Below the pieces are notes generated by a model that worked only from the letters and a program-made list of their open reading frames with translations, was not told the DNA's origin and made no database searches. From NCBI GenBank assembly GCA_025594325.1, contig JANHCV010000012.1, forward strand, positions 62,001-126,000: a stretch of 64,000 nt of DNA, written 5' to 3'. The position numbers and the translations under genes are program-made. Each line of letters starts with the position of its first letter. Position 1 is the stretch's first letter. This stretch comes from Blastocladiella emersonii ATCC 22665 (taxonomy: Eukaryota; Fungi; Blastocladiomycota). Below are positions 12,675 through 64,000 of this stretch, in pieces.

Positions 12675-12949
12675 CTGCGTCATTGAACCTTCAAGTCAAA
12701 GTTCAGGCTGAATGACTTGGCGAAGAGGAACCGGGTTGCACGCGTTGCGCCACACAGCGTGCGTGTGTTCACCGCGTCGTGCATGGCCCATGTCTGCTCC
12801 GCGAAGTGTGGCAGGTGTCAATACGCGGTCCATGAGCGCCACTTAAAACCACTCTGCTTCCGCTCTCCCAAACCTGGCGGCGCAAAACGAAAATTGGGCG
12901 TAGTGAAGCTGTGTATTACTCTGCACGCGAGGTGCGCTCTCCTTGAGGC

Positions 12950-41408: not shown

Positions 41409-41459
41409 GCGCGGGTGCCACTGCATCGCTGACCCGCTCAACGGGGGGAGGTACTCAAT

Positions 41460-44258: not shown

Positions 44259-45531
44259 AATCAAGTGGGCCTCTGAGGATAGCGCGCGCTCGCGCCCAGC
44301 TCGAGGAGTCCGCCCGCCCACCAGTCCGCCCGCCCACCTTATTAAGCTTCATGGATCTCGCATCATGGTTTGTGTCAGCAGAAGCGATCCGTTCTTCCGA
44401 TTCATCCAATAACATGGCCGGTTTGCCTTTGTGTCATCACCTACGACTAGAGCGTGCTAATGGCCGGATCCGCAAATACCAGGTGACAGAGCCGTTGATG
44501 TTGTTGCGTGTCGTTCATGTGGCCACGACCGCGGTGATCAATCATCTGATCTCGCGTGAGCCGCCCGCAATCCCTCGCTCCTGCGCCGCCGCACCCCGCT
44601 GCGGCGCGCCCTGCTTTGTTATCCACTCTCCCCTCTCCCCGTCTTGGGTTCGGGGCCGAAGGCAGGAATAGACATCCCTGACTACTTGTCTCCCGCCTCC
44701 TTCTGTCGGCATCAACAGATGTCTTGATTCAAGAGAGGTGAGCGTGACTTGTTGGCGGTGAGTTGGTAGTGTGACAAGCTTTTTAGCGCGCGGCCCCCTT
44801 CAGGAAAGTCCGTGCAGGAAACATCGGGCCGCGCGATGCCCGAGATCAAAGGAGAGAATTTGAGTCGGTGGCGTCGGGTGATGCGGCGTGACGCAAAGGG
44901 GAGGACGCTAAAGGGAGCTCGCCTCTGCGCTCGCGTGCGAGTTCTGGACTCCGGAGCACTCGAAGCGTGAAGGGAAAGCAGACGACGGAAACAAATGTAA
45001 CTCACGGCAAACACTTCGTTATGATGTCTCCGACTGTGAGCCGCGACGACGGGGGTGGTCGGCGTGGGGTGCTGGAGTCACGGCCGCGCCGGCCACGGTC
45101 ACGGTGGGCTCGATGGCCGTCTGCGGGCCTCGAAACGGGTCGAAGAGACAGCGCGGGATGTACCTCGTGTGTGGGAAGCGATGGTAGAGCGGGCAGCAAG
45201 TTCGGGTTGAGCGTGGTAACTGGGGAGGCCGCGAGCGCTCATGGCGAGGCGCGCGGCGAGTGCAGCTTGAACGTGATGAGCAGAAGGGTATGAGCACCTG
45301 CAGCGCGGTTCGACAGCGATCGCAGCTTGAGCGTGATGAGCGGGAGGGTGTGAGCGCCTGTGGCGAAGCCACGTTAGAGACGATCCTGTGTGATGGGAGG
45401 GAAGCTGGGAATAGCGCATGGCGACAGCGGACGTACGGCGGAAAGGGGCAGCTCGCGCGCGTTGCGATGATGGCGCGAGAGACGACGTGCAGGTGTTGAC
45501 GCGGCGACGCGGGCAGCGGCTATGCAGCAAC

Positions 45532-46225
45532 GACGGCGGCGGCAAGATGATCGCTGACCAAGCGCCTGCGGCGAGGATTGACGTACGGAGTTGAGTGATG
45601 GTATGGTCGTCGGTTATGGTCGTCAGGATCGAGTGAAGCAATGAGATCTGGTCGTAGAGGCGCGTCGTGTTTCAGCCGCGGCCGCCACGGCACCTTGGAG
45701 ACGACTGACTGTTGCAACGCGGCGCCGCACGAAACGCGCGCCTCAATACTCCAAGTAGGTAAAGGAATCATAACGAATAGCAACAGGGCCCGCAAGCGAG
45801 CACCTTGGCGGCCAGCGATCAAGGGTACGGCTATGAAGCGACGTGTCGCGCTGATCGCCTTCGCCGCGGCATGCGCCGCGGATCGTCAAAGACGGCGGAA
45901 GAGTGATCGCTGACTTTACGCCTGCGGCGAGGATCTACGGTTGGAGTTGAGTAATGGAATGGTCGTCGGTTATGTTCGCCAGGATCGAGTGGAGAAGAGG
46001 GACCTGGTCACGGGGACGCATCGTGTTTCAGCCGCGGCCGCCACGCTTCCTTGGAGACGGCGCGGCGCTGGACGCGAAGCGCATCGCGAAAGTCCAAGGA
46101 GGGAGAAGGATCATAACGATTAGCATCAGGGCCAGCCGCGAGTGGACTCTCTGGCGGCTGGCGACCAAGGATACGGCCGTGAAGCAACGGTCCGCGCTGT
46201 TCGCCCTCGCTTCGGCATGCGCCAA
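45532..46225. repeat. Diverged tandem duplication, unit about 350 bp, 2 copies
   Basis: Shared blocks TGATCGCTGAC, CGCCTGCGGCGAGGAT, ATGGTCGTCGGTTATG, CAGGATCGAGTG, TCGTGTTTCAGCCGCGGCCGCCACG, ATCATAACGA and CGGCATGCGCC recur about 345-360 nt apart. Confidence 0.85.
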
Positions 46226-46585
46226 GGCTCAACGAACGTTTGAGCCCACGGGAAACCGCGAACTGGAGCCGCGAGAGCCGACTTGCCTCGCAGAAAAGCT
46301 GGGCGACGTCGGCGACCGTGAGATACGTACGCACGCACGCGCGACGGCAAGCACGACGACGATTCGGAACAGCACGCACGCCATGACCCATCCAGCGCGA
46401 TCAAAACCCAAACCGAACACCGTGAAGCGATCGACCTGGAGCGGCCGCCACGCGAAGAGCGACACCGAAGGCTCGTAGACGCACGTAAACGCGGGATCAC
46501 GGTGCAGGGTCAACTCGCGACCGCCAAAACTCGCAGGCGGGGACCGACCGCGCGCCGTTGCAAGGGCCGAACGCGGGAACGCCCG

Positions 46586-46920
46586 CCACTCCCGCCCGCC
46601 CACATCTAGAGAGCGACCATTGCACGGCGCCCACGTTGCATCAGGCGTAAGAAAGCAGCCGTACGCAGACCAAGGGTGTAGCGGGCCGAGGGACGGCGCG
46701 CGCTTCGCACGCGGTCGCGCTACCGCACGACAAAACGACGCGAGGGGCAAGCACTGACCCACTCCCCGCCCACATCTAAAGAGCGACCCTTGCACAGCGC
46801 CCATGCTGCATCGCCCGCGAGAGAGCAGCCGTACGCGGACCAAAGGAGAGATCGACCGAGGGACGGCGCGGCGCGCTTCGCACTCGCGGTCGCGCTGGCG
46901 CGCGACGAACAGACGACACC
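46586..46920 (-). pseudogene. Two diverged ~173-bp tandem units, possibly an ankyrin-like repeat gene remnant
   Basis: CCACATCTA.AGAGCGACC, GCAGCCGTACGC.GACCAA and CCGAGGGACGGCGCG each occur twice. The minus strand reads …TAALSRAMQHGRCARVAL*MWAGSG, loosely like ankyrin-type A..G...L.WW..SG. The repeat is certain; the ankyrin call is weak. Confidence 0.4.
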
Positions 46921-47357
46921 ACGGCGTGACGACGAAACGGCATGTTGATCGACATGAGAGGAGATACATTGCAAGTTGCTGGGAGAGCGAGAGAGGGAGA
47001 GCGACGATCGGCAGAGAGAGAGCGCCGAGGTCGAGGGAAGCGCCGAGGTGGAGAGAAAAAACAAAAGAACGCTGGACGGTGATTGGCCGAACACCAGGGA
47101 GCCATAGTTTAGCCAGGAAAAGCCGCTGCAAGGCGATGCCGAAGTCACGCGACTGACCGACCAATGAAATGGCGGGACGCTCTTCAGGAGGTGGCGTGAA
47201 TTGAGGGACGGCGGCTAGAGTAATTGTAGGACTGCTAGCCTTGTTGGGCGCCGCGAATGGGAGTGAACGGGAAGAGCCCCGCGTCAGCTTCGTGTCGTTT
47301 ACGTCCAAAGTCGCAGGGAGTAAGACTTCAAGTGAGCAAGTACGCTGGTCTGGAACG

Positions 47358-48752
47358 AGCGGGAGAGTGAGCAGTTTGCTCGGCACGGCGGCGAGTCAAG
47401 CAGAAGGACGGGCGAAAAAAAAAACGCCGCATCATGAGCCTTGACTCATCAGTGTGAGCAAAGAGGTCATTGCGATGTGTTGGACACCACGTTGACCGCG
47501 GGAAAATCTTGACGCCGTGGAACTTGTTGGTTGTTGGTCACACGGTTGATGATGGCCACGATCTCTCTTGTCGCTGACCGTCTTCCAAAGCCGGTGCTTG
47601 TACAGCTAGCGCAGATTCGAGCAAACAACTGCATACAAGCACCTTGAGCACGCGGACTAGACTGTCGCGCTTGGTTGACTTGCGCTGCCGCCCGTCCGGT
47701 AGAGTGGCGACGGAGCCCGTTCGCGGTGAGGTAGGGTCTGAGAGAACTTTCTAACCCTTGAAATCGACAAGCCGCTGTCTGGGCGGACCTGTCGTGAAAT
47801 TGTAAGCATCGCAGACTTTGATCGAACTGGCGACGGGAAAACAGCCGCTGTACACAGACGGTCAACTTAATCGTTCCGCCGTTAAAATATGGCGCTAAAA
47901 TCAAACTATCATGAAAGATGAGGGACGTCGGTCCTGTAGTGTAGTGGCCTATCACCCCGCACTTTGAATGCGGAAACCCGAGTTCGAATCTCGGCAGGAC
48001 CTTTTTGATGTTCGATGAGGATCAGAAGTTTACTTCCGGTATTTATTTTGTCGTTCCGAGCTCGGCAGAGGCCGCGGGAAGTCGCCCGAGGTCACAATCC
48101 CATTTTTTTAGCCGATCCTGCCCGACAACCAATGGTTTGTGTCATCAGCCACCCTGCATCGTGTTGCCCTGATTCAGAGGCACCTCTGCATCGAGAGTAC
48201 TCGTCAAACTGCGGCAGGGTCAGCCTGTGAAGCGAGCCGCCGGGCGACTCGCGTTTCGGCCATCCCCATGACCCCTACCACCATCACGGTGACTTCCAAC
48301 TCAGCTCTCGCGGAATCAGCAGTATCGATTGTCCAAGGTTGAAGTTCGGCCGCAGCAATTGGTTCGGACTTGCCGCCGCACGAGCTTCATCGTCTTAGGG
48401 AGCCGGTACCGTCAGTTATGGCCATGACGTGATGTGGCGTGTGCCTCCTTCGCACTCCCCACAAATTAGTCAGTTGCCCACCGCGACATGCTTACCATGC
48501 ACCCCATGTTCCAAGCAGTATCCCTCGTCGTTTGTCGTTGCTCTATGGTGCGGGTGCTGTTACGCGACACGTGTGGCAACCGCCCAAACTCCGTCATGCT
48601 ATTAAGATGGCGATAGCGCGCACAATGGTGAAATCATGCTGCTCGCACCGCTCGGTTCAACTGATCCGTTCTTGCAGCCTCGGGTTTGCCGTGAGGGCAA
48701 CGAGCGGTCTGTCATTTCGTCATCGTTGGTTGACGCGGATCGGCGCTCGCAT
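47358..48752. repeat. Right arm of a 1395-bp inverted repeat
   Basis: Reverse complement of 40014-41408. Confidence 0.95.
47930..48002 (+). tRNA. tRNA-Gln (anticodon TTG), identical second copy
   Basis: Same cloverleaf as 40764-40836, followed by TTTT. Confidence 0.95.
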
Positions 48753-49215
48753 CGAGGGCTAAAGCCCTCTTTTTAGACCGCGTCGCGTCCGGGATAGGGC
48801 GGTGAAATCACGTGAGCGAGGCTCATGTGTTGTGCTTCGAAAACGCGCGACAGACGCGTCGTTTGTCATCTGACCGGTGTGGCGCAACGCGTCCCGGCCG
48901 CGCACGTGATCTGCTTCGGCCTAACCCGCGGAAGCGCGGCGCTCGACGCTGGGCCGCGGAGCTCGAGCGAGCGCGCTGCGCCGACCTTCGATCAGGCTCG
49001 CCAGACTCCGAGCACATGAACGCGTAAGAAGTGCATAAGCGCGTCCAGCCGCCAACGGAGCCCGTGCTTGGTGTGCGTGTTTCGAAACGGAACCTGTGCT
49101 CGGCGGACGTGCTTGGACGACGCGGGCCGCCTTGGAACCGCGAGGCACGAGCACGTTGACGGACGCAGGCGCGAGTTCAACGGTCGCGCTCTGAGCGACT
49201 TGCGAGGCCTCATGA

Positions 49216-49850
49216 GTGTCTCAAGTGAAGACCGCGAGCTCGAGAGATCCGCTTGAGGAGAACTTTGCGCGAGATATCATTCCTGGCAAATATGTAGCTC
49301 GCGCAGCTCGCGTTTATCATGGACGAAGTGTGCCGAAGCCCGCTGGCTTCGCACAGTTGGTTCTCTCGCTTGACCTCGCCGAGGACGCGCAGAGTGTCGC
49401 GGGCGGCACCGTTTACACGGACGGGTCGTTCCGTGACGCGGGTTCGCCGGACGTGGCGCCGCGTGCGGGCGTCCTCGTGAGCGGATCGCTGGAACTCACT
49501 GTTTGCGTCATTGACAGGAATCACTCGAGCTTCTGCTCCTAGCTGCGGGACGCCGTTGCGTCCGCTCGCCGCGGCGCCCAGCTCACCTAGGCGCTGAACA
49601 ACGAGAGCGTCATCGACGCGGCGCGTTTTGGGCCGGCACACGCGCATCCGCCCGAGCGAACGTCTTGCCGCAAACTCGCTCCTGTGCTTCCAGCTTCGCG
49701 CGCTCGCGAGCCAGCTGACGACCCGTGCCCGTCTACACCAGTATTGGCCGCACCGCTTCAAGTCACCCATCCGCGCCAATCGCCTCAAGACTGGTATCAA
49801 GGTCGCCTACACGGCAGGCGCGTGCGTTCGCGTGCCCCGCTTCGCGCTCA
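49216..49850 (+). pseudogene. Degenerate RNase H domain of a non-LTR retrotransposon
   Basis: TVYTDGSF, then NHSSFCS*L..AVA, AQLT*ALNNESVID and IKVAYTAG. These match the order of RNase H motifs (YTDGS; SS.RAEL; ..TD...VI; KVK.H.G), with stops and frameshifts. Confidence 0.55.
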
Positions 49851-50246
49851 CTCTTCCCGGCGGTATTCGACGACGACGCTTCCCGCATCAGCAGCGCCCT
49901 CGCGGTGCTCGCCGAGGTCGAGATCGGCGGCGGCCTCCGCGCACGCGTCGCCGGCTCGCTCGGCGAGCAGCTCAGCAGCTCAAACCGTATCAAATGTACC
50001 GCGGCCGCCGTCATGGACGCGCCGGTCGCCGGTCGCCGCATGGTTCAAGACGGATGTACAACCACCTGCGCGAGCTCATCGACCCGCGTCTCGCGCTCCC
50101 CGCCGCGACGGCCATCGCCTCGAGCGCCGTGCGGTAGCTTGCTTGGCGCCCGCGCTGCAACGCGATTGCTGATGCCGCGCCCGTGGCCCATGACGGTGCC
50201 CTGACGCCACTGGACGCGAGCGACCAGATGCACCGCCCTCCGGCGC

Positions 50247-50351
50247 GCTGTGTTGCGTCGAGCTGTGCTGTGACGCGCTGTGCTGCGACGCGCTGTGCTG
50301 CGACGCGCTGTGCTGCGACGCGCTGTGCTGCGACGCGCTGTGCTGCGACGC
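50247..50351. repeat. 15-nt minisatellite (GCTGTGCTGCGACGC) x7
   Basis: Five perfect copies at 50277-50351 plus two degenerate copies. No spacers. Confidence 0.95.
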
Positions 50352-50532
50352 GCAGCTCTCCGACTCCGGCGGCAAGTACTGCCATAGCGACGATGTTCAA
50401 GACTCGTTCAACAGGCGCTTACCCGCGATTCAAGCGATTGCGCACCCACACGGCGCAAGCGCCCAACATGGCACGGGCTTGAGCCCTCGATTGAAAACCA
50501 AACGCGAAGCGTTTCGGTGGCTCGAGTATAAT

Positions 50533-50880
50533 TTAAGGCTTCTTTATCACGAGACGCGGTGGGAGGTTCCAGACGACATACGGCAAACCTCAGTGTCGGC
50601 ATCCGGGTGCCCGGTGTGCGCAACAGTCAGCCGTGGACGCGTCGCGCCACTCACGTGTGCGTGATCACGGCTCCGATGCCATTCCACCGACCTGAAAGCG
50701 CCACACATGGTCCAGCCACCGCCCAACAACACAAGATATAAACGAGAGCAAGCTGTAATTTTTCATGGCAGTGAGAGACAGAGACGGTTGGGTTTGTAGA
50801 CGACGGGACGGAGGGAGGAGAACAAGAGGAGAGAGGTGGGGTGAGGTGGCTGTCGGCCTCCGCCCGTGGTCGCGACTGGC
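50533..50880 (-). repeat. Diverged inverted copy of 39660-40013 (3' flank of the G-alpha gene)
   Basis: Shared blocks CAGTCGCGACCA, AAACCCAACCGTCTCTGTCTCTCACTGCCAT, TACAGCTTGCTCTC, GCGCTTTCAGG, GTGATCACG.ACACGTGAGTGGCGCGACGCG, GGATGCCGAC and AAAGAAGCC. Confidence 0.88.
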
Positions 50881-51449
50881 AAGCCGCTCCATGACAGCAA
50901 TTGCGTGGCCGTGGACAAGCTCAAATTGGATGCGCGGGTCTTTTCTGTGAAGCGCAACACGAGGAGCTGTAGTCCAAGCGCGGATTTTCGTAAGCATGAT
51001 CGACTCGGGCGACCCTTGGCCGAGAATCAAGTCGAATGCGTCTGAGGGCGGTCAACGGCGTAGTAAAGAGCGCCATCGCTGGAAAGCAAAAGCATTGTTG
51101 AGTTGACAGCAAGGGAATCTCGATCCCCCGAGCGTGAGCACATTGTACTCGGCAAGTCGCTCGAGATTGCACGCATTACGCGCGGACTCGGCGCCCTTGA
51201 ACACGCCGCGGTACTGCGCATGAAGCCGGCCCATGAAGGCCGCCGCTGAGTCTGCCGAAGTCCGACTGGCACTCGGGTCGGTCGGAAGCGCCGAAGCGAT
51301 GTACTGACCCCGCTCCTGCTCAAGCATTTCCATGGACCAGTCTGCCTCGAGCCAAGCGCACCAGCAGCGGCGAAGTTCCTGCAACGTCGCCTCGTCCGTA
51401 ATCTGCAGCGGCGGGTTAGTCCGAATGTCGAGCCAATCCCGGGAGAGGC

Positions 51450-52090
51450 ACACTCTAAACCGTGGCCCAAAGTCGGAACTCAGGCCCGAGCGTGTTGCGC
51501 TGACCGCTCGAAGGTATGTACCAGTTGGCGAAAGTGAGAGACGGAAGCGGCCCTTGCGACCAAGGTCGTGGGCCGCCCGTGGTGCCTTGTTCCTGAGCGC
51601 GGATTGCCCGCAGCGTACTGGAAACATTCTTCGAGCACCTGTTCATGGTCTCGGTCCATTAGAAGCAATCCGAGGACCAGTCGAGCTCACGCGCCCGTCC
51701 CGCCGCGATGCCAGTGCAGCATGTAGCGCGGGTTGTAATCTTGCGGTCCACCTCGCCAAACTGGTACGAGGCTGCATCGGCGGCACTGTAAGCGGCTAAG
51801 AAAGCCAACTTTGAGAAGGCCGAGGCCAGGTATGCGGCGGCGACAGTCGTCGGGTTGCTGATCGGCGTCTGAAGGATCAGGAGCGGTGCGCTGCGGTGGG
51901 CGGGGAACGGAACTGAGGCACTGGATACTCTGGACGCCCCTAAACTGCAGACAGGGCGTGTGCATAGAATGGCCGAGGATTTTGTTGAGCGCCGTGGCGC
52001 CCGCGAGTATGATGGGCTCGCCGTCACCCTGACGCACCAGGTGCGTATCGATGTCGACCGAGCGGCACGCAACTAGAGTCGCCGTGAGGA
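51450..52090 (-). pseudogene. Degraded ORF of unknown family; inverted paralog at 53335-53920
   Basis: GDGEPIILAGATALNKILG vs DGRAIILTGPTALKK. PLLILQTPISNPTTVAAAYLASAF vs PLLLPQAPIRNPATIASAYPASAF. MDRDHEQV vs MDRDHGRV. Confidence 0.65.
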
Positions 52091-53239
52091 TCACGTCCGT
52101 CTCAACAGCAATCAGGCCCGAGCTCAAGGGGATCTTGACGGAGAGCCCGTTTTTGATACCTGTCAACGAAAAGCATGTACGTCTCGCCCTCGACCTATCG
52201 ACAAAGCGCTCGACGATAGCCGAGTTGCGCAGCCGCTCCAAGTCCGTGAGGAACAAGTGCGGGTACTCTTTTACCCGAGCGTGTTGTGCGTGGGCCAACC
52301 GCAAAAGGCGGTACGCAGCGGCGAGCACCGTGTCTTCCGCTCGCCATGTTTAGCAATCGGAGAGTTGAGATTGAAAGATTTGCGGCCGAGAACTGACATG
52401 ACAATACTGCGAACGCGAACAAGCGCATTGGCGGCGTATCAGCCAAATTGTGCGGAAGAGAAGACTTAGCAGTGCGCTCTTACCGCTTCTCAGTACACCT
52501 TTTGCAGCAGCAGCTGACTTCCGATTTCCGCCATGAGCTAGGTTAAAAGGTGGACGTTGTGAGGGCCGAACCTTTTGCAATCCATCCCTGGAACGCGATT
52601 TTAAGCATAAAAGCAGCATTCCTACCAGTATCATGAGTCACCCCTCGCTCGGTGTTAGTCGACAACCTCGCTTTGCGCGTGATCTGCTGCTTTGTCGCCG
52701 CGTTGGGTTGGTTCGCAAGCGTAATCGGCTGGCGGTCGCAAACTCTTTCCTCAGCGTCGTCCCCACCGCCTGAAACGTATGTTTTGATACCGCGTAGCAC
52801 CGTCGTTCTCGTCCTTCCCGCGTTACCGTCGAATTTTCCTCATTCTGTCTCATGGGAGGGGTTAGCGTCAGAGCGCTACAGCCTACAGCCGCGGTCAAAG
52901 AGCGGTGGCTCAGCGGATGGCACAGCGGGTGGCTCAGCGGGTGGCGCAGCAGTGGGAGACAGCACCGACCGACCGTTCCATCGTCGCTCCAGCTCACCAC
53001 ACAGCCAAAGACGTCCAAGCAGGTCACCGTACCAAATGAGTAGCACCAGGAATTTTATCGAACTGAGCTGAGGCCAATGCGGGGAGTCAGGTACTCGGGA
53101 ACGAGAGGCAATACTTGTGAAGTGGGGGTTGGAGGTCGGAACTGCAAAGGAGCCACTCACGAGAGGTTGATGTCTCCGATAGGTTCAAATTGCTCAAACA
53201 GAAACTCAGCTTTGATAAAGCTACAGCTGAGAATTCAGC

Positions 53240-53324
53240 CAGCTGAAACGTGGCACCTTCATCCCGTGCATTTTACTGAGGATTGATCCAGCTGATCCAG
53301 CTAACCCCGGAACCAAACGGACCC
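53240..53324. mobile_element. Solo PIF/Harbinger-family terminus
   Basis: GAACCAAACGGACCC (53310-53324) is a 1-mismatch variant of the TIR and is followed by TAA. It carries the subterminal motifs CAGCTGAAACGTGGCA and GCTGATCCA. No partner end found. Confidence 0.75.
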
Positions 53325-53334
53325 TAATTCAACG

Positions 53335-53920
53335 TTCGTTGCGCTCCGTTCGGTCGGCCTTGACACGCACCTGCCGCGCATCGGTCAGTGCGTGATTCAG
53401 TGTGACGGCCGAGCCATCATCCTCACGGGCCCCACAGCGCTTAAAAAATCCTCGGCCGCGATAGACGCACGCCGTAACCGCAGGTTGATGACGTCCATAG
53501 CATCCAGTGGTTCAATTGCGTCCCCGCCCATCATGTGCCACCGCTCCTGCTCCCCCAGGCGCCAATCAGGAACCCAGCGACCATCGCTAGCGCGTACCCG
53601 GCCTCGGCCTTCCCAACTGTGGCATCCTCGGTCGCAGACGGCGCCGTTGAAGCAGCCTTGTACCAGGTCGACAGGTCGACCACGAGCTTCGTCTCGCGCT
53701 GACCAAGGTGCCGTATCACATGCTTCACCGGCGCCGCGGCGACAAGGGCGTGTCGGTCGGCAGGTTCTTCGAGTTTGCCTCATGGATCGGGACCATGGAC
53801 GGGTGTTCAAGCACACGACGAACGATACGGGCGATCCACTTTTAAGTACTGGTTGGCGCGGGCGGCCCGTGACTTCGGCCTCAAGGTCCCCTCGCACGGC
53901 TCAATTTCGCCAGCTAAGAT
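53335..53920 (+). pseudogene. Inverted paralog of 51450-52090
   Basis: Nucleotide and peptide similarity as above, with frameshifts and stops. Begins immediately after the solo TIR and TAA at 53310-53327. Confidence 0.65.
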
Positions 53921-55399
53921 GGTGTGTTGGGCCTCCAACGAGACATGTTTGATTTCAGCCTCAGATGCGACCATTACTCACGGCTTCGAGTGCTCGCTCG
54001 ATTAATCACGCGTGATGCTTCCCGACCATGGCGCTCATGGCCGCGCGGCCATCATTGCTCCATCACACACGAGTCTCAGATCACGAAGCATGACGTAGAA
54101 AACTGGTAGGTATCACGAAACTGCTATCCTACAAAGTTCTTGGGCGGATCGAGGACAAACTACTTGCAAACGCGTGAGGTAACTGGTGTGCAGACGAGCT
54201 GGCTAATCGGACAGACTCTTGTGCAAAATCGTGGAGCAACTCGATTCTCAGCACTGGCTGGAGCAAAGAGTGACTGTATTCATCGAGCTCATTCGACTAT
54301 CTTGGGATAAAATCAAGGTCGACACGACACGACTGATTCAAGCTACAGTTGAGACCCAAGTGTGTGTGCAGCACACACACACCGAGTGAGAAGAAGAGCT
54401 GTAAACCGACCCCCGTCGTCACTGCGCTTGCGCTACATTGCTGTGCACTCCCGCGGCCTGCTGTCGCGCGCAAACGCAATCCGGCATTGGTCAAGGAAGT
54501 GCGACGCGCCCCAGCTCTGCGCCCCGGCTCCATCGTCATTCGGTGGACCGAAATGCGCTTTTCGCTTTTTGGATCTTGTGCAAAGGCTCACCAGTGCGCG
54601 TGCCGGGGGCCGTGGTGGCTTTGCCTGACCTCGTGTCAGTGGTCTGAACCAGTGCCGGGTTCGAATCCTATGCCGGGGAACGGTTCCAACGGAACTATGA
54701 GATCAATACCAGGGGAAACCCTTTTGTCGTCTTCACTATAATTTTTGGATCCCAATTCGTCTTTGTCTCTTCCTTCTTTGAGCGCAGGGATAGCAAAGTC
54801 AAATTTTTAATTGGAGTTCCGCTGCCTCCGTCAACGCGCACCGTTCCCTGCGCCATGCCAAGCGAGCTGAGAAATACAGCCATCCAATACGACACGGGAC
54901 GATACGATACAACCAAAAAAAATCATGTTCGTTCACAACGTCATGGATGTATTGGTCCCAAGCGAGGCGGAAGCGCTCGAACTCGATAGTCACCACCTCG
55001 CTCAGCAAGAATTCATGCGTCAACTTGGCACTCTCCAGCACCTACGCCGCCGCGAGGCCAAACAGGTGGCGGGCGATCCGCGCGCGGCCTGCGTCAATCA
55101 ATACCACGCCCTTTTCCGCTCTCCGGTAACTGGCAGTGTAAAACGTGTATTAGGGCCCGTTTGGTTCCGGGGTGAATCAGGTGGATCAATCGATTTTACA
55201 CGGTCCGGTGTTCACCCAGCTGAAACGTGGCATTTTCACCCCGTCGCGTTCATCGCGGCGTTTGGGTCGACCCCCGGATGAGCTGAATGGAACCCTCGTC
55301 GCTGAATTGCCCGTCTGCTCGCCCCCGAAACCTTCAGGCTGTGCTTCCCGGCCTATATAAACGCTGTTTTCCTTCGTGGGGCGGCTCGACCACCACCGG

Positions 55400-55751
55400 C
55401 GAGTACTCGCACCTCGAGCAGGACGGCAAGGAGTCTGGTGACGTGGAAGGTGTCGATGGTCAAGACGACGCGGCCCCCGCCAGCAAGCGCAGCCGCACTT
55501 CGGACAGCAGCTCGCGTCGCCTCTCGGACTCGGAATTCCTCATGGGCATCAAGGAGGTGTTCCAGAGCGTCGCGACCGCCGACTCCAAGCCCGTCCTGAC
55601 CGCCGCACTTGAATGGGTCCAGGACGCGTACAACGACAATGAAGAGTACCAGATCGACGTCGCCACCCGCCTGACCGAGGATCAAGCGCTTCGCGCCATG
55701 GCCGTGTCCGGACCGAAGCGCAAGCGCGTCCTCGAGTTTTTCATTCAGTAG
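55400..55751 (+). pseudogene. C-terminal remnant of the Harbinger second ORF (Myb/SANT partner), inferred from position
   Basis: Coding-like stretch (…KRSRTSD…AALEWVQD…KRKRVLEFFIQ*) convergent with the transposase inside the TIRs. No Myb/SANT domain is visible. Confidence 0.55.
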
Positions 55752-56063
55752 CTCTCTCGCACATGTCCCCCTCCCTCGCGTTGCTTCCTGGCCTTGTTCT
55801 CGCCCATTTGTGTCCAATACATCTGGCTTTGTGTCCATCGTATCTTCAATCGTTACCCTTCGCTCAAAAATGACGCGACTCGTTGAGAAACGCGTGGTTC
55901 GCAAAGTGTCTCACACGTCACGTGATTGATCGACGCGTCTCCACCGATGCGTTCTGACCTCAGCGACGCGTCAAATCATCTGGAATCGCTTATCTAACGT
56001 TATAGTACTTGACAAATCAGTATATTACAGCATGCATGCGGGTACAACAATTATTTCGCGCCT

Positions 56064-57380
56064 TCAAAGACGGGTCCCACGAGCGGCCATGACGCGCCTG
56101 TACTCGGTCCAAAGAACATTTGCGATGCGGTTCCGAAGCGAGATACCGCGCTGACGAGCTCCGTCCAGCGAGGCCTCGAGGACAGCGGCCTCGTCGTCCT
56201 CCTCGTTCTCGTCGTTCAGGGGCTCGCGCCCACGCACACGCGCCTCACGCGCCGCGTCCCGCGCGCGCCGGAGCTCCGTCTCGGCGTCGCGAAAGAAGGC
56301 GTCGCCGCCTTGGTTCCACTTGTTGATCATGTTGTGCAGCGTGCAGAGCGCGTACACAAGCTTGACTTGAGTCTTGATTGGGTAGGCCGCGCCAATCGAG
56401 AGGACGCGGAACCGCTTCTTGAGCACGCCAAAGATACGCTCAACAGAGTTGCGGAGCGACGCGTGGCGCAGATTGAAAAGCTCCTCGCGGTTCTTAACTC
56501 TACGTACGTTGATGAAGCGGATGAGATGGCGCCAACGTGATGGTCATGGCAGTGAGAACGTACCCATCCTTGCCGCGAGCAAACTCGCGAAGATGATAGC
56601 GGGTACCGCGGAAGGGCACGATGATGGACGTGCGGTTTGCGTAGCCGCCGTCGGCGAGGTAGAAGCGGCCGGCGGGGATCTTGAACCCACGGGCGAAGGC
56701 GTCCAAGAGCACGCGCGAGTCATGCGCCTTGCCCTCCCACCCTGCGAGAACGTAGGTGAAGTTCAAGTCAAAGTCGCAGGCAGCGAGGACATTTGAGGAG
56801 ATGGTCCCCTTGCGGTTTCGGAACGAGTCGTGAAGCTTGGCGGGCACAACAAACGGGATGTGCGTTCCGTCAAGCGCGCCGACCGCGTTCTGGGACGGAG
56901 CGTATTTCGGATCGTGGGCGATGCGCTCATGCACGGGCGTAGAATCGGACGGCTGGACAATGAACTCGGGCATCAGGCGGTACAGAGCGTCGAGCACTTG
57001 CTTCAGAACCCTGGACGCGGTCTCGCCAGAGATTTGGAACCGCTCCCTGAGGTTGCGGTTGGTGCTGCCCTCGCCGGCCATGACAAGAAAAACCATGAAG
57101 CGCGCCTCGACGGACAGCTCGCGGCCGTCGGCGAGAAGGCCACGGTCGCGGAACAGGCGGCAGATGGCCTTGAAGGTCTCGCGGGGCATACGGGCGATTT
57201 CCGAAAAACGCGTTTCGCTGTTGCACGTCAGCAGCTCTTGAACCCACGACTCGCCGGAAGCGTGGACGTGCGGATAGGCTCCCACGAGCGGCGCTCGTTG
57301 CGCGCAGCGAGACGTCGCAGGAGAGCGAGGGCGGCCGTGAGTATGAGGCCGCGCAGCTTGCGGTTGTATCCCTTGCCCAT
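56064..57380 (-). pseudogene. Harbinger (DDE_Tnp_4 / HARBI1-like) transposase with a 1-bp frameshift near the 5' end
   Basis: Catalytic GALDGTH, YLADGGY and NSVERIFGVLKKRF, plus NRKG, GWEG.AHD.RV and LHN. Intron 56500-56563. ATG at 57380. A 1-nt deletion near 57256 relative to the copy at 63141-63350. Confidence 0.93.
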
Positions 57381-57760
57381 GTTGTTTGAGGGCTCGAGAA
57401 CACGATGCGTGAGGTTAGGTGTTGATTCGTTGCAATAAGTGCGGCTGCAAAGAGGTGGGAAAGATTTTATTGCGGGGGGGGGGGGGTTCATCCAGCGGGG
57501 CGTTTGGTTCGCACGGCCGCTGAGATGAACGGGGGTGAGGTGAAACGTGGCAACTTTTTCAGCTGATCCACCTGATCTGAACCAAACGGGCCCTAAGAGA
57601 GTGAGTGCAGCGACGCGTGGAGCGGAGAGTGTCTGGCTGCAAGCCCAAGCCTCGCGGTTATGATCACGACCCGCTGCCGCCTCCGTCGCCGCTGAACGAC
57701 GTTTCTTACTAATGGCTCACGCCCGTAAATTTCTCGATCTATATTCGTCAAGGAAGCATT

Positions 57761-58134
57761 TTACTTGAGCTTCTCAGCGACCTCGTCGCAGAAGGTGGCC
57801 AGGTTCACATCGCGCTCGCTGCAGCCGTCCGCGTCGTGCGTCGACCACGTCACCTCGACCTTGTTGTACACGTTGAACCATTCCTACGTGACAAGAGCGG
57901 GGTCAGCGGGGTGATCACGCGAGTAGCCGCGATCGGGCGGGCAGTACGCACAGGGTGGTGCGCGGCAGTCTCGGCCTTGAGGGCGATCGCGGACATAAAC
58001 TGCCAGGCCTGGTTGAAGTCGCGGAACTGGTACGACTTCATGATGGCGTCGCGGCGGGGCAGCTGGTCCTTCCACCCGCGGGCAAAGAGCGGCGCGAGGG
58101 CCGAGGCGCGGTTGGCGAGCTTGGTGATGGTCAT
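57761..58134 (-). CDS. PCBD1: Pterin-4-alpha-carbinolamine dehydratase
   Basis: Exons 58134-57952 and 57883-57761 give 101 aa: [15 protein letters not shown]...[29 protein letters not shown]. Confidence 0.95.
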
Positions 58135-58357
58135 GGTGAGTGCAATGCACAGAGTTACATGAACTGCCGGTCAGTTTTGAGGCTGTGAGAGGGGAGAGAT
58201 AGAGGGAGAGGCGAACGATCGGCGAAGCCACCCCAACGCGTTGTGGGCGCCACGTGTCGGCTCGACGCGTCTCCGCCCTCGCGTCGCGTCCGCCGTTCTG
58301 CAGGCCGCCTTTCTCACCGCGGAGACTCTTTGGAAGCCCTAGAGCTGATGTAGCACC

Positions 58358-60696
58358 ATGCAATTGCACTTGGATCTTGCGATATGGACGACCGCCCATG
58401 TTCCGCGGAACGCCGATGCCTTCGTCCCGCTGTACACGCTGCGGACCAAGGAGTCGATCACCGACCCGCTCGAGGGCGACTGGTTCGAGCACTGGCGCTC
58501 CACGCGCGGTGCAGCCCGCCGAGTGACTGAGCCATCCGCCCTGCTGCCCGCCGCTACCCGCCAGACCCTCGCCAACCTGGAGGCGCACCTGACGAGCGAT
58601 CCACCGCTGTGTCTGCTGTGGCACGACGAGAACACGGTCCAGATCCCGCTCTCATCCGGTCTTCTCGTGCGTCTTATCATCCACGGCGACTCGAATGACT
58701 TGTCCGCCGTCGTGCTCGACCCGATGCTTGCCAATGTCGTCAACCCGCCGCCCGCGCGAGACGGGCCGCAGGCGATCTACTCAACCGCTTCTGCGACGAC
58801 GACCGCCGCGATCCGAGGCCCCGTGCGGTGGTCCGGCGCTCACATTGAGCCGCACTTTGTCGTCGCCCAAATCGCGGGCGAGGAGAAGATCCGGCTCTAC
58901 TACAACAGCACGCGGCACAAAATTATGAATCTCGAACAGAATCCTCGCGCGACCATGGCCGCTCGGGTATGTTGCTCTCGAAACCGTCTGCCGCGGTGCG
59001 TCAACTGACCCGCGTATCGTACATCTAGCCCGAGTTCGTGGACGTACCTTACCCGCACGCCGAGCTTTCGCGGTTCCAAAGCCACCGCGAGCATCTTGCC
59101 GTCATCGCCCAGCACAGCGTCCAGCTGTACGAGCGCGTCGAGCGCGAGGGAAGGTGCGCTGCTCCCATGCCATGCCACCACTCAAACCCTAACCTCGTCC
59201 GACCTAGGATGCTTCTCAAGTCGACGGGAACAATCCAATCCGCGGACCCGCTCGCCGTTGTCCACCTCTCGCTCGGCTCCACCCTCATCACGCTCGTGCA
59301 CTCGACTGGCATCGGCGAAGCCTGGGTCCGCGGCTACTCGCTCACCAAGGGCACCTGGACCGAGCTCGACGCGCGCGGTCCCGTGCTCAGGCTCTCGAGC
59401 GCGATTACGGCGTGGGCCGCGAGCGCACCGCCCGCGTCCGCCGAGCACGACGGCGAGCGGCGACACGGCGTGACCTCCATCTACTTTGGCACAGCCACCG
59501 GCGAGCTCTTCCACCTCTGCGTCACCTGCGAGACCGACCACTTGTCGTGGAACATTGTCGCCAAAACTCCGGGTCCCGAGGCCGCGCCGTCGCACATCGC
59601 CGTCCATCCGCGCGGCGTCGCGACCGCGGTCGTGTACCCGTCGGGCCGTTTGTCCGTGTTCGACCCGCCTCTTCGCCCCATGGATTGCAGCCTTTCCGGG
59701 TCGCTCGCTTCCCGCGGCCGTGACACGACCACACCCTCGCCCATCGACCTGCTTCCGTCGCTCGCATTCCGCTGCCCTCGCGCGCTCGTCTCGTGGTCGC
59801 CCGAGCCCGCGGCGACGCGGCACGCTTACTCGCGCCCGGCTGCGGCGCCCAACTCGGCGCTTCTCGTCGTGTTCCAGCGTGGGCCCATCGTCAGCGTGCG
59901 CATCGCCGCGCCGCGGGCGGCCCTCGCCTCGCTCATCGCCTACGCGCGGCATCTCCTCGTCCGCGGCCACTGGAACCACGTCCGCAACCTCGCCACCGCA
60001 TGGCCGCTCGTCTCGCCGGGCCACATGGCAGACGTCGTCGTGCTCACGACGCTGCTGTGGGACGACACGACGTGCCGCCGGTCCCGCGGCACCGCAGCAG
60101 CGGCGGAGCAGATGCAGGTCGTCGAGCTGCTCCACCGCCTCGCGCAGGCGACGGGTGAGCCCAAGGCCTGCTCGACCCGCGTCACCGACGACATCACGGC
60201 GCTCGCGCGGTGCGTGCTCTCGCAGCTCGCGGCACAGGGCAACATCGAGGCCGCCGTCGTCGCGGCCGCGCGGCTGCCTGGCACACTCGACGTATCGGAC
60301 CTCCTGCACAAGTTCGCCGTGCTCGCGTTGTAATCGCCGGGCCAGACGTGCCGCGGGATCGCGGCCGCCGCGCACCTCGCGTTCCTGCGCCGGTGTCCCG
60401 GCCCGTACCCGCCGTACCTGTCGAGCGATCCAGCGGCGCGCGAGACGGACGACGGCGAGGCCGTGGCGGCGATGACGCCCGAGGACCTCATCGCGCTGTA
60501 CACGGACCGCGTGGCGCCGATCGCGGACGGCGCGCGGCCCGCGTTCGGGATCGACGTCAAGCGGCTCGCTGCGTACCTCGAGGCGTCTGGGCAGCACGAC
60601 GCGGCGCGCCGGTGGTGGCAGCAGATCCGGAACGACCGCGACGCGAGTCGCGCGGTGGCGCGGATCGATCAGGTGCGCGGTGGATTGTGCGAGTAA
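58358..60696 (+). pseudogene. WDPCP: WDPCP/Fritz (CPLANE subunit) with an in-frame TAA at 60331-60333
   Basis: TLANLEAHL....L...W......Q....SGLLV.L.....L..VVLD.ML matches the WDPCP N-terminal region. Introns 58967-59028 and 59154-59207. The frame continues past the TAA with coding-like codons to the stop at 60696. Confidence 0.7.
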
Positions 60697-60736
60697 AAAA
60701 CATCATGTTATTCACCAAGGTCCGAATGAATTCCCC

Positions 60737-61213
60737 TCAATCTTGGGGTTGGCCAAACGCGGTTTCGTGCATGAACCAGAAAAACCAGTCCTTTGGCACC
60801 ATCGACAAACCGTGCATTTGAAGGCACTTGACGCTGCCGAGTCGGATACACGTCTGCAGCATGAGATACGCTCCGAAAACGCCGATTGGATTCGTGTAGA
60901 TGCGCAGCGTCTCGAGCGTCGAGGGAAGGGCTGGAGCGAGAACCTTGACACCATCATCCGTGATTTCGTTGTGCGCCAGGTTAAGGAATTTGAGATGGGG
61001 CGGGATCACCGTGACAAGCGCCGCGAGATCGGTGTCGTTCAAATGACAGCGGGCGAGCGTGAGCTCGCGAAGAGTCGGTACAATGTAGGGGGTCCAGAAC
61101 GAAATACAGCCAGATGAGTGAATGGCCCATTCCAAGTCAAGCAAGCACTTCGAGCGCGGGAAAGCGAGCAAAGTTGGTGGCCGGGTCAAACACGGCATCA
61201 AGACCTTCGTCAT
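60737..61213 (-). CDS. RNI-like LRR ORF (fragment)
   Basis: LRELTLARCHLNDTDL, LKFLNLAHNEITDDGVKVLAPALP and LETLRIYTNPIG. Confidence 0.7.
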   Translation of the reverse strand: MTKVLMPCLTRPPTLLAFPRSKCLLDLEWAIHSSGCISFWTPYIVPTLRELTLARCHLNDTDLAALVTVIPPHLKFLNLAHNEITDDGVKVLAPALPSTLETLRIYTNPIGVFGAYLMLQTCIRLGSVKCLQMHGLSMVPKDWFFWFMHETAFGQPQD

Positions 61214-62039
61214 AAGGATTACCGGGTTCGCCAGTCAGTTCCACGTCGAGTTGGGTGAGCGTGAGACGCTTCAGGCTCGGGAGATCGCGGTGAAGAAGCG
61301 CGTTTGCGCCGAATACGCCAAACTTGCAATCGGTTGCTGTGAGGCACTCGAAGGTTCGAGGAAGGTGATGCACAATCGCGAAAAAGCCGTCCGACCCAAT
61401 TGGATTTAGCGACACGTCAAGCGCTGTCAAGTTAGGGGGAAGCCGACGAGCGAGAGCACGCGCACCGTCGCGAGTTATCAAGTTCTTGGAAAGCGACAAG
61501 CTGCGAATCCGAGGTGGTAGGTTAACGACAACCGTTTTGACACCCACGTCTTTTAGCTCGCACTCGGCGAGTGAAAGGTCGGTAAGAAGCGGAGGTAGTC
61601 CATGGACCAGCACCTCGAGCAAACCGTCATCAAGAGGGAAACCCCGAAAGCTTAGAGAAGTGAGAGCCGACGGGAGAAAGTGAAGGTGAGCACGAAACTG
61701 CGGAGACCGAAAGTATTCGTCTTCAATGTAAAGCGACGTAAGCGATTCGGGTAGCCACTTGCCCGGGAGAGGGTCGCAATAATCGTCAAGGCGATTATTT
61801 CCGAATTCCAGAGTCCGGAGCGAATCAGGAAACTTGAGCGCCTTGAAGCGAGTCCAGTTGAAATCGCACCCAAGCAGGGACGCAGTCTTGACGGGTTGCG
61901 CCGAGCTGGCCATGGCTTGGTTAAGTAGGTCGATGCCTTCCATAGTCAGGCGCTGGTGGTACAAATTCACCTCATCGAATCCATCGACTCGCGCAGAATC
62001 CAAGAGTTTCTGGGCCTTCGTGTCCCCTTCCGCTGGCAA
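61137..62039 (-). CDS. RNI-like LRR protein
   Basis: Repeats of LP..L..L.L..N.I...G (LPPRIRSLSLSKNLITRDGARALARRLPPNLTALDVSLNPIG). Confidence 0.8.
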   Translation of the reverse strand: MPAEGDTKAQKLLDSARVDGFDEVNLYHQRLTMEGIDLLNQAMASSAQPVKTASLLGCDFNWTRFKALKFPDSLRTLEFGNNRLDDYCDPLPGKWLPESLTSLYIEDEYFRSPQFRAHLHFLPSALTSLSFRGFPLDDGLLEVLVHGLPPLLTDLSLAECELKDVGVKTVVVNLPPRIRSLSLSKNLITRDGARALARRLPPNLTALDVSLNPIGSDGFFAIVHHLPRTFECLTATDCKFGVFGANALLHRDLPSLKRLTLTQLDVELTGEPGNPYDEGLDAVFDPATNFARFPALEVLA

Positions 62040-62277
62040 GGTAACGGGCGGCTAGAGTTGAGGAGAAGCGGCCCATATCAATCAGTACAATCGTTCATTA
62101 TGGATAACCAGGGGTCCAGGGACACTCCTTTTCGATACAAAGGGGATCCGTAGCCGATATTCATAGAGTGAGAGTAGACCAAGCGCGAACAGAGCCCAGG
62201 TGGGCCACAGAAGTCCCGCGGTTTGAAGCGGGAGCTGCGACTCGCGCCACCAGTCGAGCACACGAAAATGTCGATTT

Positions 62278-63140
62278 TCAGCTGCCTTTTTTGAGCGCCG
62301 CGGAAGTATGTTCGAGCGACATGTTAAAGTGGCGGCGGTACTGCAGCAGATCAGCGCGGACCGAGATGGTCGCCTGGTCAGCCGAAACGCGAGAGATTTG
62401 GTTGCAGATGGCGATTATAACGCCGGGGATTTGCGCTCTTGGCGCCACACGAGCGTACTCGAGCATGGCGCCGACCTCGTCCGGTTGGTGCAACTTCACC
62501 GCGTCGACGAGAATCTGGTCCAAGAGCGCCGGAATTGCAAGCTTAACGTGTTGCATAGAGTCCATTTGTTTCATCATTTGAGCTGCATCCATGGCTACGG
62601 GGGAAGCGGCGATCCAGCGTCCGCGATCGCTTCGTCTCAAGCCGCACTGCGGGACAGGTTGACAAGAGTGGCAGCCACCGTCGGCTGACCGCGTTGCGAC
62701 GCGTTTGCCGCGAGAAGGCCATCGTGCGGTTTACGATGCATTGGCAGGAATTTACTTGAAACCATATGGACGCTTTGTATCTGGTCTTCAATCGCGGGCT
62801 CAAACCCTCCGCCACGTGCGGCATCAGCTCACGCGGGAGACCTGGACTGCTGCGCAAGCGGATCGAGTCGGCGACGCGCTTGATCGCGATCAGGTAGTTC
62901 GAGAAGTGATTGCCGTGCAGTCGGAGCAGATGCTTTAAAAATGCCTCGATTAAGTTCAGAGTATGAGTGCACGCGCATCCTGCCAGGATCGCCGCGTCCG
63001 CAGCAGTGCGGTTGTGCGAACGCTCTGAGGGGCACGGACACGTCCTCCCGGTCGAAAAGCGGGTGATGTGGTACACCTTGAAGGTCGCGGAACGTGTGCG
63101 TGAAAAATGCATCGTCATCCGAAAAGTTGCACTGAGCAAC
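62278..63140 (-). pseudogene. Unknown-family coding remnant (GLSPRLKT family), truncated by the Harbinger end at 63141
   Basis: Protein-like frames 62543-63139 and 62278-62640. Homologous to 50475-50660 (GLSPRLKTRYKASIWFQVN vs GLSPRLKTKREAFRWLEYN). Confidence 0.45.
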
Positions 63141-63563
63141 GAAGGTCTCGCGGGGCATACGGGCGATTTCCGAAAAACGCGTTTTGCTGTTGCACGTCAG
63201 CAGCTCTTGAACCCACGACTCGCCAGAAAGCGTGGACGTGCGGATAGGCTCCCACGAGCGGCGCTCGTTGCGCGCAGCGAGACGTCGCAGGAGAGCGAGG
63301 GCGGCCGTGAGCATGAGGCCGCGCAGCTTGCGGTTGTATCCCTTGCCCATGTTGTTTGAGGGCTCGAGAACACGATGCGTGAGGTTAGGTGTTGATTCGT
63401 TGCAATAAGTGCGGCTGCAAAGAGGTGGGAAAGATTTTATTGCGGGGGGGGGGGGGTTCATCCAGCGGGGCGTTTGGTTCGCACGGCCGCTGAGATGAAC
63501 GGGGGTGAGGTGAAACGTGGCAACTTTTTCAGCTGATCCACCTGATCTTAACCAAACGGGCCC
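63141..63563 (-). mobile_element. Truncated second copy of the Harbinger promoter-side end (423 bp)
   Basis: Nearly identical to 57171-57593, including the G13 tract, the transposase 5' coding start and the TIR (AACCAAACGGGCCC). Followed by TTA. Confidence 0.95.
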
Positions 63564-63597
63564 TTACTCTGCACGCGAGGCGCGCTCTCCTTGAGGC

Positions 63598-64000
63598 TCA
63601 CTCGCTTAAGTAGTACGCGCGGACAGCCTCGGCGTCAGCAGCTGCGGCCTCGCTGATGAGACGGCTAAAGTACCCGCCGCCCGCATCGCCGCTGTCCTGT
63701 CGAGCGGGGCGGAGTAGGAGGTCGTGCGGGTGGCCCGACTCAACGACGCGGCCACCATCGACGACGATGACCCGGTCGCACCCGAGATCGACAAGCGTGC
63801 GTAGGCGGTGCGCGATCGTGATCACCGTCACCGACTCCTTGGCGTATATGGCGCGGAACACGCGCCAGAACTGCTCGTCCGAGGCATACTCCATGGACGA
63901 CGTCGGCTCGTCGCTACGCGATTTCAATCCATCAGCGGGCTGTAGCGTGAGCGCGTGAGAGAAGGACGTACCACAGAAAGATCTTGGCCCGCTTCTGCCG
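63598..64000 (-). CDS. 3' end of a second, closely related ABCC transporter gene (continues beyond the window)
   Basis: Near-identical to 12950-13355, including the last intron and DEPTSSMEY..ITIAHRL. A few substitutions and one 3-nt indel. Confidence 0.9.
   Translation of the reverse strand, partial: GRSGPRSFCGTSFSHALTLQPADGLKSRSDEPTSSMEYASDEQFWRVFRAIYAKESVTVITIAHRLRTLVDLGCDRVIVVDGGRVVESGHPHDLLLRPARQDSGDAGGGYFSRLISEAAAADAEAVRAYYLSE

Follow-up and report, generated by a model that had tools for sequence, protein, structure and literature searches.

We analyzed a 64,000-nucleotide stretch of DNA from the zoosporic fungus Blastocladiella emersonii ATCC 22665 (contig JANHCV010000012.1, positions 62,001 to 126,000), referred to below as the window, in which a block of 8,411 bp (55153-63563) lies directly behind the stop codon of an ABCC gene. 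The block consists of a complete 2,441-bp PIF/Harbinger transposon (element E), 5.5 kb of host DNA (the cargo), and a 423-bp right-end fragment of a Harbinger element (fragment e). The cargo contains copies of PCBD, encoding pterin-4a-carbinolamine dehydratase, and of a WDPCP/Fritz-like gene, together with open reading frames (ORFs) for leucine-rich repeat (LRR) proteins. It was the only composite of this kind that we found.

The assembly was made from PacBio HiFi data (605,547 reads with a mean length of 10.5 kb, ~186x, 6.37 Gb over 34.27 Mb) with the LJA assembler, followed by purging of haplotigs and polishing with Illumina data (PMC9730499), and our sample is this one strain and one assembly. 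For the region to the right of the window, we used a locus of contig JANHCV010000012.1 (L001) that is 100% identical to window positions 48358-64000 and extends 6.7 kb further right.

Junctions and flanks of the block

At the left junction, the sequence reads ...AAAACGTGTA-TTA/GGGCCCGTTTGGTT at 55150-55153, with GTGTA-TTA before the element (slashes mark element borders). The inner right end of E reads ...AACCAAACGGGCCC/TAA-GAGAG at 57593/57594 (GGGCCC/TAA), and the outer right end of the block reads ...AACCAAACGGGCCC/TTA-CTCTGCAC at 63563/63564 (GGGCCC/TTA). Thus, the two central observations of an earlier note on this DNA hold as they were made: the flanks of E are mismatched, TTA on the left and TAA on the right, and its left end shares a perfect TTA duplication (55150-55152 and 63564-63566) with the outer right end. 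The outer left and right ends are oriented as for transposition, share a single TTA duplication, and stand in a contiguous target, as is expected of a macrotransposon. The 14-nt Harbinger end has only four matches in the window, and this search detected no further end of E's family between 57594 and 63141. Fragment e is 98.8% identical to 57172-57593, with homology that starts abruptly, and the right-hand component of the block is a terminal piece of an element, not a second element.

When the block and one TTA are removed, the remaining 16-mer is identical to window positions 12911-12926, as the earlier note had stated; there, the paralogous site is uninterrupted (GTGTATTACTCTGCAC). The note had called this an empty target site, and a matching, uninterrupted sequence does exist, but it is a paralogous site and not an allele. 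Both ABCC genes are on the minus strand to the right of their TTA, with stop codons at 12950-12952 and 63598-63600; the two distances from stop to TTA are equal, as claimed, but measure 31 nt rather than 32.

Homology to the paralogous site extends into both flanks. The right flank (63564-64000) is 97.5% identical to 12916-13355, and when L001 is used, the match spans 4.6 kb (window 12916-17501 versus L001 15207-19798). Along this match, identity is 94 to 98% over the first 185 nt, 100% over 13100-15700 (~2.6 kb), and 62 to 87% over 15700-17500. Because identity jumps in this manner, the ABCC pair must be an old duplicate with a sharp, recent gene-conversion tract and not a recent duplication. 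The left flank is 62 to 70% identical to the paralog. Among all places on either strand of the 64-kb window, the 100 nt left of 55153 align best with 12801-12889, where the match was predicted to fall; the local-alignment score is 25.75 compared to 20.25 for the next unrelated place (mean 10.8, standard deviation 2.2). Judged by these scores, the left-flank homology, which includes the 22-nt gap that the earlier note had described, is weak but significant. Since both flanks are homologous to the paralogous site, the alignments identify the 8,411 bp plus one TTA as an insertion relative to the paralogous ABCC 3' flank, which would have been either never occupied or restored.

The strong ABCC homology that begins at the TTA also led us to consider tandem duplication by sister-chromatid transposition. 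We rejected it: the left flank is likewise homologous to the paralog, and the 4.6-kb ABCC duplication is old, although it contains a conversion tract of recent date.

Several further features adjoin the left side of the block. An annotated 117-amino-acid gene model at 54943-55751 (L001 6586-7394) fuses the left flank with ORF1 of the transposon and probably represents a chimeric prediction. At 53236-53324, a diverged Harbinger end (GGGTCCGTTTGGTTCCGGGG..., minus strand), followed by TAA, belongs to a separate, older relative of the family that lies 1.8 kb left of the block, and near it, 51745-52032 pairs with 53397-53681 as a 74% inverted repeat.

Element E has the DDE transposase, the 3-bp duplication, and the short terminal inverted repeats (TIRs) of a PIF/Harbinger element, and its termini also share the subterminal motif ATCAGGTGGATCA. 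ORF1 lies at 55287-55751 on the plus strand. The transposase is encoded on the minus strand, where the ORF at 56500-57285 matches DDE_Tnp_4 (PF13359) at 5.2e-12; its relatives number 873 at an E value of ≤1e-10 and carry PF13359 and PF04827 (DDE_Tnp_4/Plant_tran type). A 1-nt deletion near 57255 breaks the N-terminal frame of the transposase in E and in one other copy (L007), whereas the same frame stays open in e and in most copies. A search with the transposase ORF returned no B. emersonii protein; a search with ORF1 instead led to other copies of the element.

We compared E with a total of eight Harbinger copies out of perhaps a hundred in the family. Seven further full-length copies (L002-L008) are 2,439 to 2,450 bp long and 98.0 to 98.6% identical to E. 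Their 3-bp duplications match in 7 of 7 cases (TAA, TTA, TTA, TAA, TTA, TGA, and TTA), and the TTA/TAA mismatch around E is therefore exceptional in the family. The family is young and mobile, given the 98 to 98.6% likeness of eight copies and these seven perfect duplications. It is also clearly abundant in the genome; summed over E, the depth of Logan contigs (assembled from reads) is 50 to 200x that of the flank, a figure that is not a copy number. At informative sites, the copies are mosaics of one another, which shows that they exchange sequence. Dating of elements by private mutations proved unreliable, as 5 of the 9 "private" sites of E fall within 170 nt and resemble a patch acquired from some copy outside our sample.

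ORF1 of the 2.44-kb form has no Pfam hit and only weak matches to Myb_DNA-bind_3 clusters. A long variant has 803 extra bases after element position 221 (window 55373-55376) and an annotated 331-amino-acid Myb_DNA-bind_3 protein (L005 1-2111, minus strand). Because the longer variant carries this protein, it is probably the autonomous form, and the 2.44-kb copies are probably nonautonomous deletion derivatives that lack the Myb part.

Fragment e differs from the right end of E at 5 positions (4 events), and 3 of the 5 are polymorphic in the family, as would be expected if e and the right end of E come from different elements. For the same reason, we rejected the idea that e is a local duplicate of E's own end.

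Table 1. Features of the block, its flanks, and the paralogous site (window coordinates)
Feature	Position	Strand	Remarks
Uninterrupted paralogous site GTGTA-TTA-CTCTGCAC	12911..12926	.	31 nt downstream of stop of ABCC paralog 1
Left flank, diverged remnant of ABCC duplicate 3' flank	55066..55149	.	Homologous to 12808-12915, 22-nt indel
Left copy of TTA target-site duplication	55150..55152	.	
Element E, complete 2,441-bp short-form PIF/Harbinger	55153..57593	+	15-bp perfect TIRs GGGCCCGTTTGGTTC
TAA	57594..57596	.	Same TAA-GAGAGTGAG junction at L012 9237-9239
Duplicated host segment, 5,544 bp	57597..63140	.	99.64% identical (20 differences) to L012 9240-14783
PCBD (pterin-4a-carbinolamine dehydratase) copy	57761..58134	-	101 amino acids, one GT-AG intron; Pterin_4a 1.5e-11
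WDPCP/Fritz-like gene copy H9P43_008553 (P0001)	58358..60696	+	Premature TAA at 60331-60333
RNI-like LRR ORFs, multicopy family, no gene annotation	60737..62039	-	LRR_6 ~2e-10; paralogs in L002 and L005
ORFs upstream of LRR part	62278..63139	-	Frames cut at 63140; parental ORF continues past (14471-14806)
Illegitimate junction	63140..63141	.	Three-way alignment, 1-nt overlap
Fragment e, right-terminal 423 bp of same-family Harbinger	63141..63563	+	Intact transposase N-terminal frame; private T at 63549; no left end
Right copy of TTA target-site duplication	63564..63566	.	
ABCC paralog 2, 31-nt 3' untranslated region and C-terminal coding end	63567..64000	-	Gene continues to ~68155 in L001

The parental locus of the cargo

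A second copy of the cargo was found through a 740-amino-acid protein (P0137, H9P43_008720) that falls in the same 90% protein cluster as the WDPCP product of the window (P0001). Its locus, L012 (700814-723152 of the same contig), has the opposite orientation, lies ~0.58 Mb from the block, and is a donor PCBD-WDPCP locus of the kind that the earlier note had proposed to look for. Positions 6784-14783 of L012 are 99.1% identical to window 55152-63141. A Harbinger element (E') occupies the same TAA there, is flanked by matching TAA copies (...GTTCGAGG-TAA/GGGCCC...GGGCCC/TAA-GAGAGTGAG), and looks like an ordinary insertion into TAA. The series E-TAA-cargo in the window thus corresponds to E'-TAA-cargo at L012, with both loci present, and the inner TAA of the window is the target duplication of E', copied along with the cargo.

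The right border of the cargo is different. At the equivalent of 63140, the host sequence of L012 is unbroken (...GAGCAAC/GGATGTATTTATC); neither an element nor a TWA is present at this point, and we found no family end in the 7.5 kb to its right. In a three-way alignment, the window tracks L012 to GAGCAAC(G); beyond it, from (G)AAGGTCT (position 57172), it matches element interior, and one G is shared. The junction at 63140/63141 is therefore of the end-joining type and is not a junction between a transposon end and host DNA. An unannotated 210-amino-acid ORF on the minus strand (62829-63461) spans it and joins a leader of ~37 residues from the transposase 5' region and the first ~50 transposase residues to cargo-derived sequence. 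At L012, a repeat of another family starts 130 nt right of the cargo border (14914-16696, 75 to 80% identical to window 41566-43532); its window counterpart sits inside a block bounded by 1.4-kb inverted repeats (40014-48752).

We take L012 to be the parent because it is longer and continuous and has an intact WDPCP. The coding sequence of PCBD is identical in the two copies. In WDPCP, a codon that reads CAA in the parent is an in-frame TAA in the window (60331-60333), and 5 of the 6 coding differences between the copies alter the protein; on these grounds, the window copy is judged to be the derived, decaying duplicate. Gene model H9P43_008553 bypasses this TAA through a predicted 18-codon intron, whereas H9P43_008720 has CAA and no such intron. 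The earlier claim that the block carried PCBD, WDPCP, and LRR ORFs into the 3' flank of an ABCC gene therefore holds for the insertion and for the presence of the genes, but the WDPCP copy is not intact.

The LRR gene of the cargo and its upstream domain also have paralogs that adjoin other Harbinger copies of the same family (L002 5497-5916 and 940-1764, L005 4132-5543, and L007 173-424), and the paralog in L002 abuts the left end of its Harbinger. Genes of this LRR family, or sites next to them, seem to be insertion targets of the Harbinger family.

Homologs of WDPCP are present in Allomyces, Catenaria anguillulae, and Blastocladiella britannica. The order Evr1_Alr(+)-Dus(-)-WDPCP(+) is common to Allomyces javanicus (L010) and C. 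anguillulae (L011), and in the latter, PCBD is found 9 kb upstream from WDPCP. The two genes are direct neighbors with divergent orientation in B. emersonii, with no Evr1_Alr or Dus between them. We found no ABC transporter near WDPCP in A. javanicus or C. anguillulae (10 kb on each side) or in B. britannica (8 kb upstream), so that an ancestral PCBD-WDPCP pair beside the ABCC gene, which the earlier note had named as the finding that would speak against an insertion, is not seen in the relatives examined. Since neither B. emersonii locus keeps the ancestral neighbors of WDPCP, synteny cannot polarize the event.

Logan contigs of three runs (X1, X2, and X3) were compared over 54600-60599; of X2 and X3, one probably holds the PacBio data, and the other comes from earlier sequencing of the same sample. 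In X1 and X2, contigs read through the left junction and enter the end of E unbranched, and no empty allele at this junction was seen in the Logan contigs of ATCC 22665. Both sets of cargo alleles are present in the contigs of this strain, and where X2 and X3 show alternative letters, these match the L012 alleles exactly. In the same two runs, contigs of the cargo start at 57587, directly after a difference between E and E' at 57586, and the depth of the cargo is 1.4 to 1.8x that of the left flank, which is indicative, as depth is not a copy number. These data bear on the idea of a mis-join at the 423-bp repeat or between the two cargo copies, with the true site behind the second ABCC gene (ABCC2) holding only a simple Harbinger insertion. 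Such an error could have been favored by the 98.8% identity of the 423-bp repeat, by the existence of a second cargo copy, and by the purging of haplotigs. However, HiFi reads of 10.5 kb on average at ~186x span the 423 bp and most of the block, 20 sites distinguish the cargo copies, the cargo/e junction of the window is absent from the donor, contigs of two runs cross the left junction unbranched and show both allele sets, and a mis-join would require two compensating errors. We therefore regard an assembly artifact as very improbable.

Routes by which the block may have formed

Because L012 keeps its cargo copy, the event was duplicative: the cargo was copied rather than cut, from a parent without a right-hand element. 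This finding disposes of the view that the cargo is single copy and arrived by cut-and-paste macrotransposition. We consider it quite likely that the block is a duplicative composite insertion, that is, a copy-type capture anchored on Harbinger ends that proceeded through repair or through re-replication.

Any such account has to accommodate the two elements on the left of the cargo. E and E' differ at 53 positions (~2%), of which 43 are polymorphic in other copies, and this is the largest distance of E among the eight copies. From the divergence of the cargo (20/5,544), ~9 differences would be expected. The inserted element is thus not simply a copy of the present donor element, as it would be in a typical composite insertion.

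Among specific routes, we tentatively favor the repair of a break in a resident Harbinger. A short-form element at the TTA, 31 nt behind the stop codon of ABCC2, would have supplied the outer ends and the TTA/TTA duplication. This element would have been broken, probably by transposase, and the broken end would have paired with the family copy at the PCBD-WDPCP-LRR locus ~0.58 Mb away on the same chromosome. Repair synthesis would have left that copy at its right end and continued through the TAA and 5.5 kb into host DNA, and the new strand would have been end-joined, with a 1-nt overlap, to the remaining right-terminal 423 bp of the resident element. Most of the divergence between E and E' would be explained in this manner, because the resident element would not descend from that of the donor.

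Several points weigh against this route. A break at 57171/57172 predicts that the last 423 bp of E equal those of E', and ~10 events differ; since ~10 events separate the two ends, the plain version of the repair needs a later conversion of at least 423 bp in E or E'. A variant would require no change to E: the terminus of the resident element itself would prime on the donor flank, and a microhomology switch would lead back to the sister. This variant predicts that e equals the right end of E, and 4 events differ compared to ~1.5 expected. In addition, a simple insertion at the TTA of ABCC2 was seen in no allele, and L012 is taken as the parent from its continuity and its intact genes rather than from an outgroup; a comparison of its flanks with Catenaria and Allomyces for synteny gave nothing. 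Finally, we know of no case in which such repair has been shown for PIF/Harbinger elements.

The same discrepancies bear on alternative transposition coupled to re-replication, of the type described for maize Ac/fAc. Left and right Harbinger ends, from sister chromatids or from a second element since lost, would have been cut after replication of the donor and inserted into the unreplicated ABCC2 TTA. Fork movement would then have re-replicated, on one side, the element with 5.5 kb of the DNA to its right and, on the other, no more than a 423-bp right end, and both forks would have aborted, after which their ends were joined. A single event of this kind would yield the outer TTA/TTA, the element with donor flank, the truncated right end, the 1-nt junction, and the retained donor, and the structure matches published maize composite insertions, including nonhomologous end joining with 4-bp microhomology (PMC4270019). 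However, E should then descend from E', and its 53 differences, 43 of them at shared polymorphisms, require a later replacement of ~2.2 kb; E and e should be identical, and 4 events differ; a search for a second element with a reversed end found none within 6.7 kb left of E'; and the mechanism has been shown solely for hAT elements. We rank this route below break repair and consider it rather unlikely.

The divergence between E and E' counts as well against classical macrotransposition, the earlier note's own proposal in a modified form. Here, the donor would once have had a complete second Harbinger further right, the outer ends would have moved or been replicatively copied as a unit into the TTA, and a later internal deletion would have taken away the surplus host DNA together with the left 2 kb of the second element. 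The outer ends are correctly oriented and share the TTA, and only the outer flanks match, a feature used to diagnose the White Cap Tam3L macrotransposon of maize (10.1101/082677). In yeast, a Ping derivative of 7.1 kb remains able to transpose (PMC10288884), and local same-orientation PIF pairs are common in maize (PMC8903248). Against this, progenitor elements at both borders of the cargo would be expected, and L012 has one at the left border only; to the right of the cargo, 7.5 kb of sequence hold no family end, and the border itself lacks a TWA. Host DNA is fused to the interior of an element, which calls for an extra deletion of >7.5 kb together with loss of the donor's second element. Simple cut-and-paste is excluded because the donor is retained, and the replicative form appears improbable to us. 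The claim that a pre-existing, two-ended composite moved as a unit is thus not supported by the comparison with L012, where the donor is kept, the right border lacks an element, and the cargo/e junction proves to be host DNA joined to element interior.

Double crossover between homologous elements was also considered and rejected, as the cargo/e border is nonhomologous.

Thus, the break-repair route remains our first choice, and the discrepancy between E and E' is explained by no single-event model. Given the mosaic family, later sequence exchange involving E, E', or e would be plausible.

Significance and comparison with known systems

The capture of genes by transposons is still argued mostly from end products, and here the product and its parent can be read in one high-quality assembly with all their junctions. 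The capture starts at a Harbinger terminus with its TAA and ends in an end-joining scar inside another Harbinger end, while the parent is kept, which is the signature of a copy-type process. Copy-type capture, by repair or re-replication, has so far been documented experimentally for maize Ac (PMC4270019) and is, to our knowledge, not on record for PIF/Harbinger elements or for fungi. In this zoosporic fungus, the duplication concerns PCBD and WDPCP, the latter a conserved ciliary gene, and one of the copies is already in decay. The locus also has a consequence for annotation, as gene model H9P43_008553 masks a premature stop behind a predicted 18-codon intron.

In the open-access literature, we found no transposon-bounded duplication of whole genes with an identified parent for Harbinger elements or for fungi. 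The earlier note's claim that Pack-type Harbinger gene transport would be new is accordingly sustained in part: no fungal example was found, but Pack-PIF elements (PMC8903248) and maize Ac composite insertions (PMC4270019) have been published. It is possible, though we would not count on it, that the block represents the birth of a gene-carrying Harbinger "macro-element," with the whole of PCBD and a near-complete WDPCP between functional left and right ends and the parent still in the genome. If this is true, the block would be a two-ended unit that could henceforth be moved by autonomous copies of the family; it would then be the first documented route from an ordinary Harbinger insertion to whole-gene transport in a fungus and would provide direct evidence for the repair model of capture. 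We saw no sign that the 8.4-kb block has moved since its formation, and one copy was found.

Pack-PIF elements, and capture through the mobilization of neighboring insertions, have been described for maize and rice (Gisby and Catoni 2022, PMC8903248). As in Pack-PIF and other Pack-TYPE elements, PIF/Harbinger ends enclose captured host DNA in the block, and capture is tied to neighboring insertions of the same family. In contrast, Pack elements are small, nonautonomous, usually multicopy, and made of gene fragments, whereas the block, an 8.4-kb structure present once, combines whole genes with a complete element and a terminal fragment.

The block also resembles macrotransposons, both those formed by Ac/Ds pairs and the maize White Cap Tam3L element, a natural gene-carrying hAT macrotransposon (10.1101/082677), in that the outer ends share a duplication, the inner flanks mismatch, and host genes lie between them. 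The progenitor of White Cap has elements at both borders of its cargo, whereas here there is an element at one border and an end-joining scar at the other.

Gap repair by synthesis-dependent strand annealing (SDSA) is known from internally deleted or filler-containing derivatives of Ds and P, and a template-switch model of gene capture belongs to the same literature. The block would share with such products the repair of a broken element from a nonallelic copy, the end joining of interrupted synthesis, and the fusion of a terminal fragment to foreign DNA. It differs from them in its filler, which is 5.5 kb of contiguous host DNA with whole genes and starts exactly at an ectopic terminus, while typical fillers are tens to hundreds of bases long.

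The closest parallel in structure is with the Composite Insertions that arise from alternative transposition of maize Ac/fAc (Zhang et al. 2014, eLife, PMC4270019; Su et al. 2020, bioRxiv 2020.08.10.245175). In both cases, transposon termini with a target duplication lie outside, and an element with donor flank, copied from the element end outward, lies inside; both have an internal end-joining junction with microhomology and a retained donor, and the maize inserts measure 4 to 23 kb. In contrast to the maize cases, the block involves a PIF/Harbinger element with a 3-bp duplication rather than a hAT element with 8 bp, and it belongs to another kingdom; the donor has no pair of reversed ends, the inserted element is not the donor's present element, and the event is deduced from one assembly rather than recovered from a genetic screen. 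Membership in the composite-insertion or the gap-repair class is not demonstrated, because the inserted element is not identical to that of the donor and the resident precursor was not seen, but the structure works like a maize composite insertion or like a large filler-type product of gap repair.

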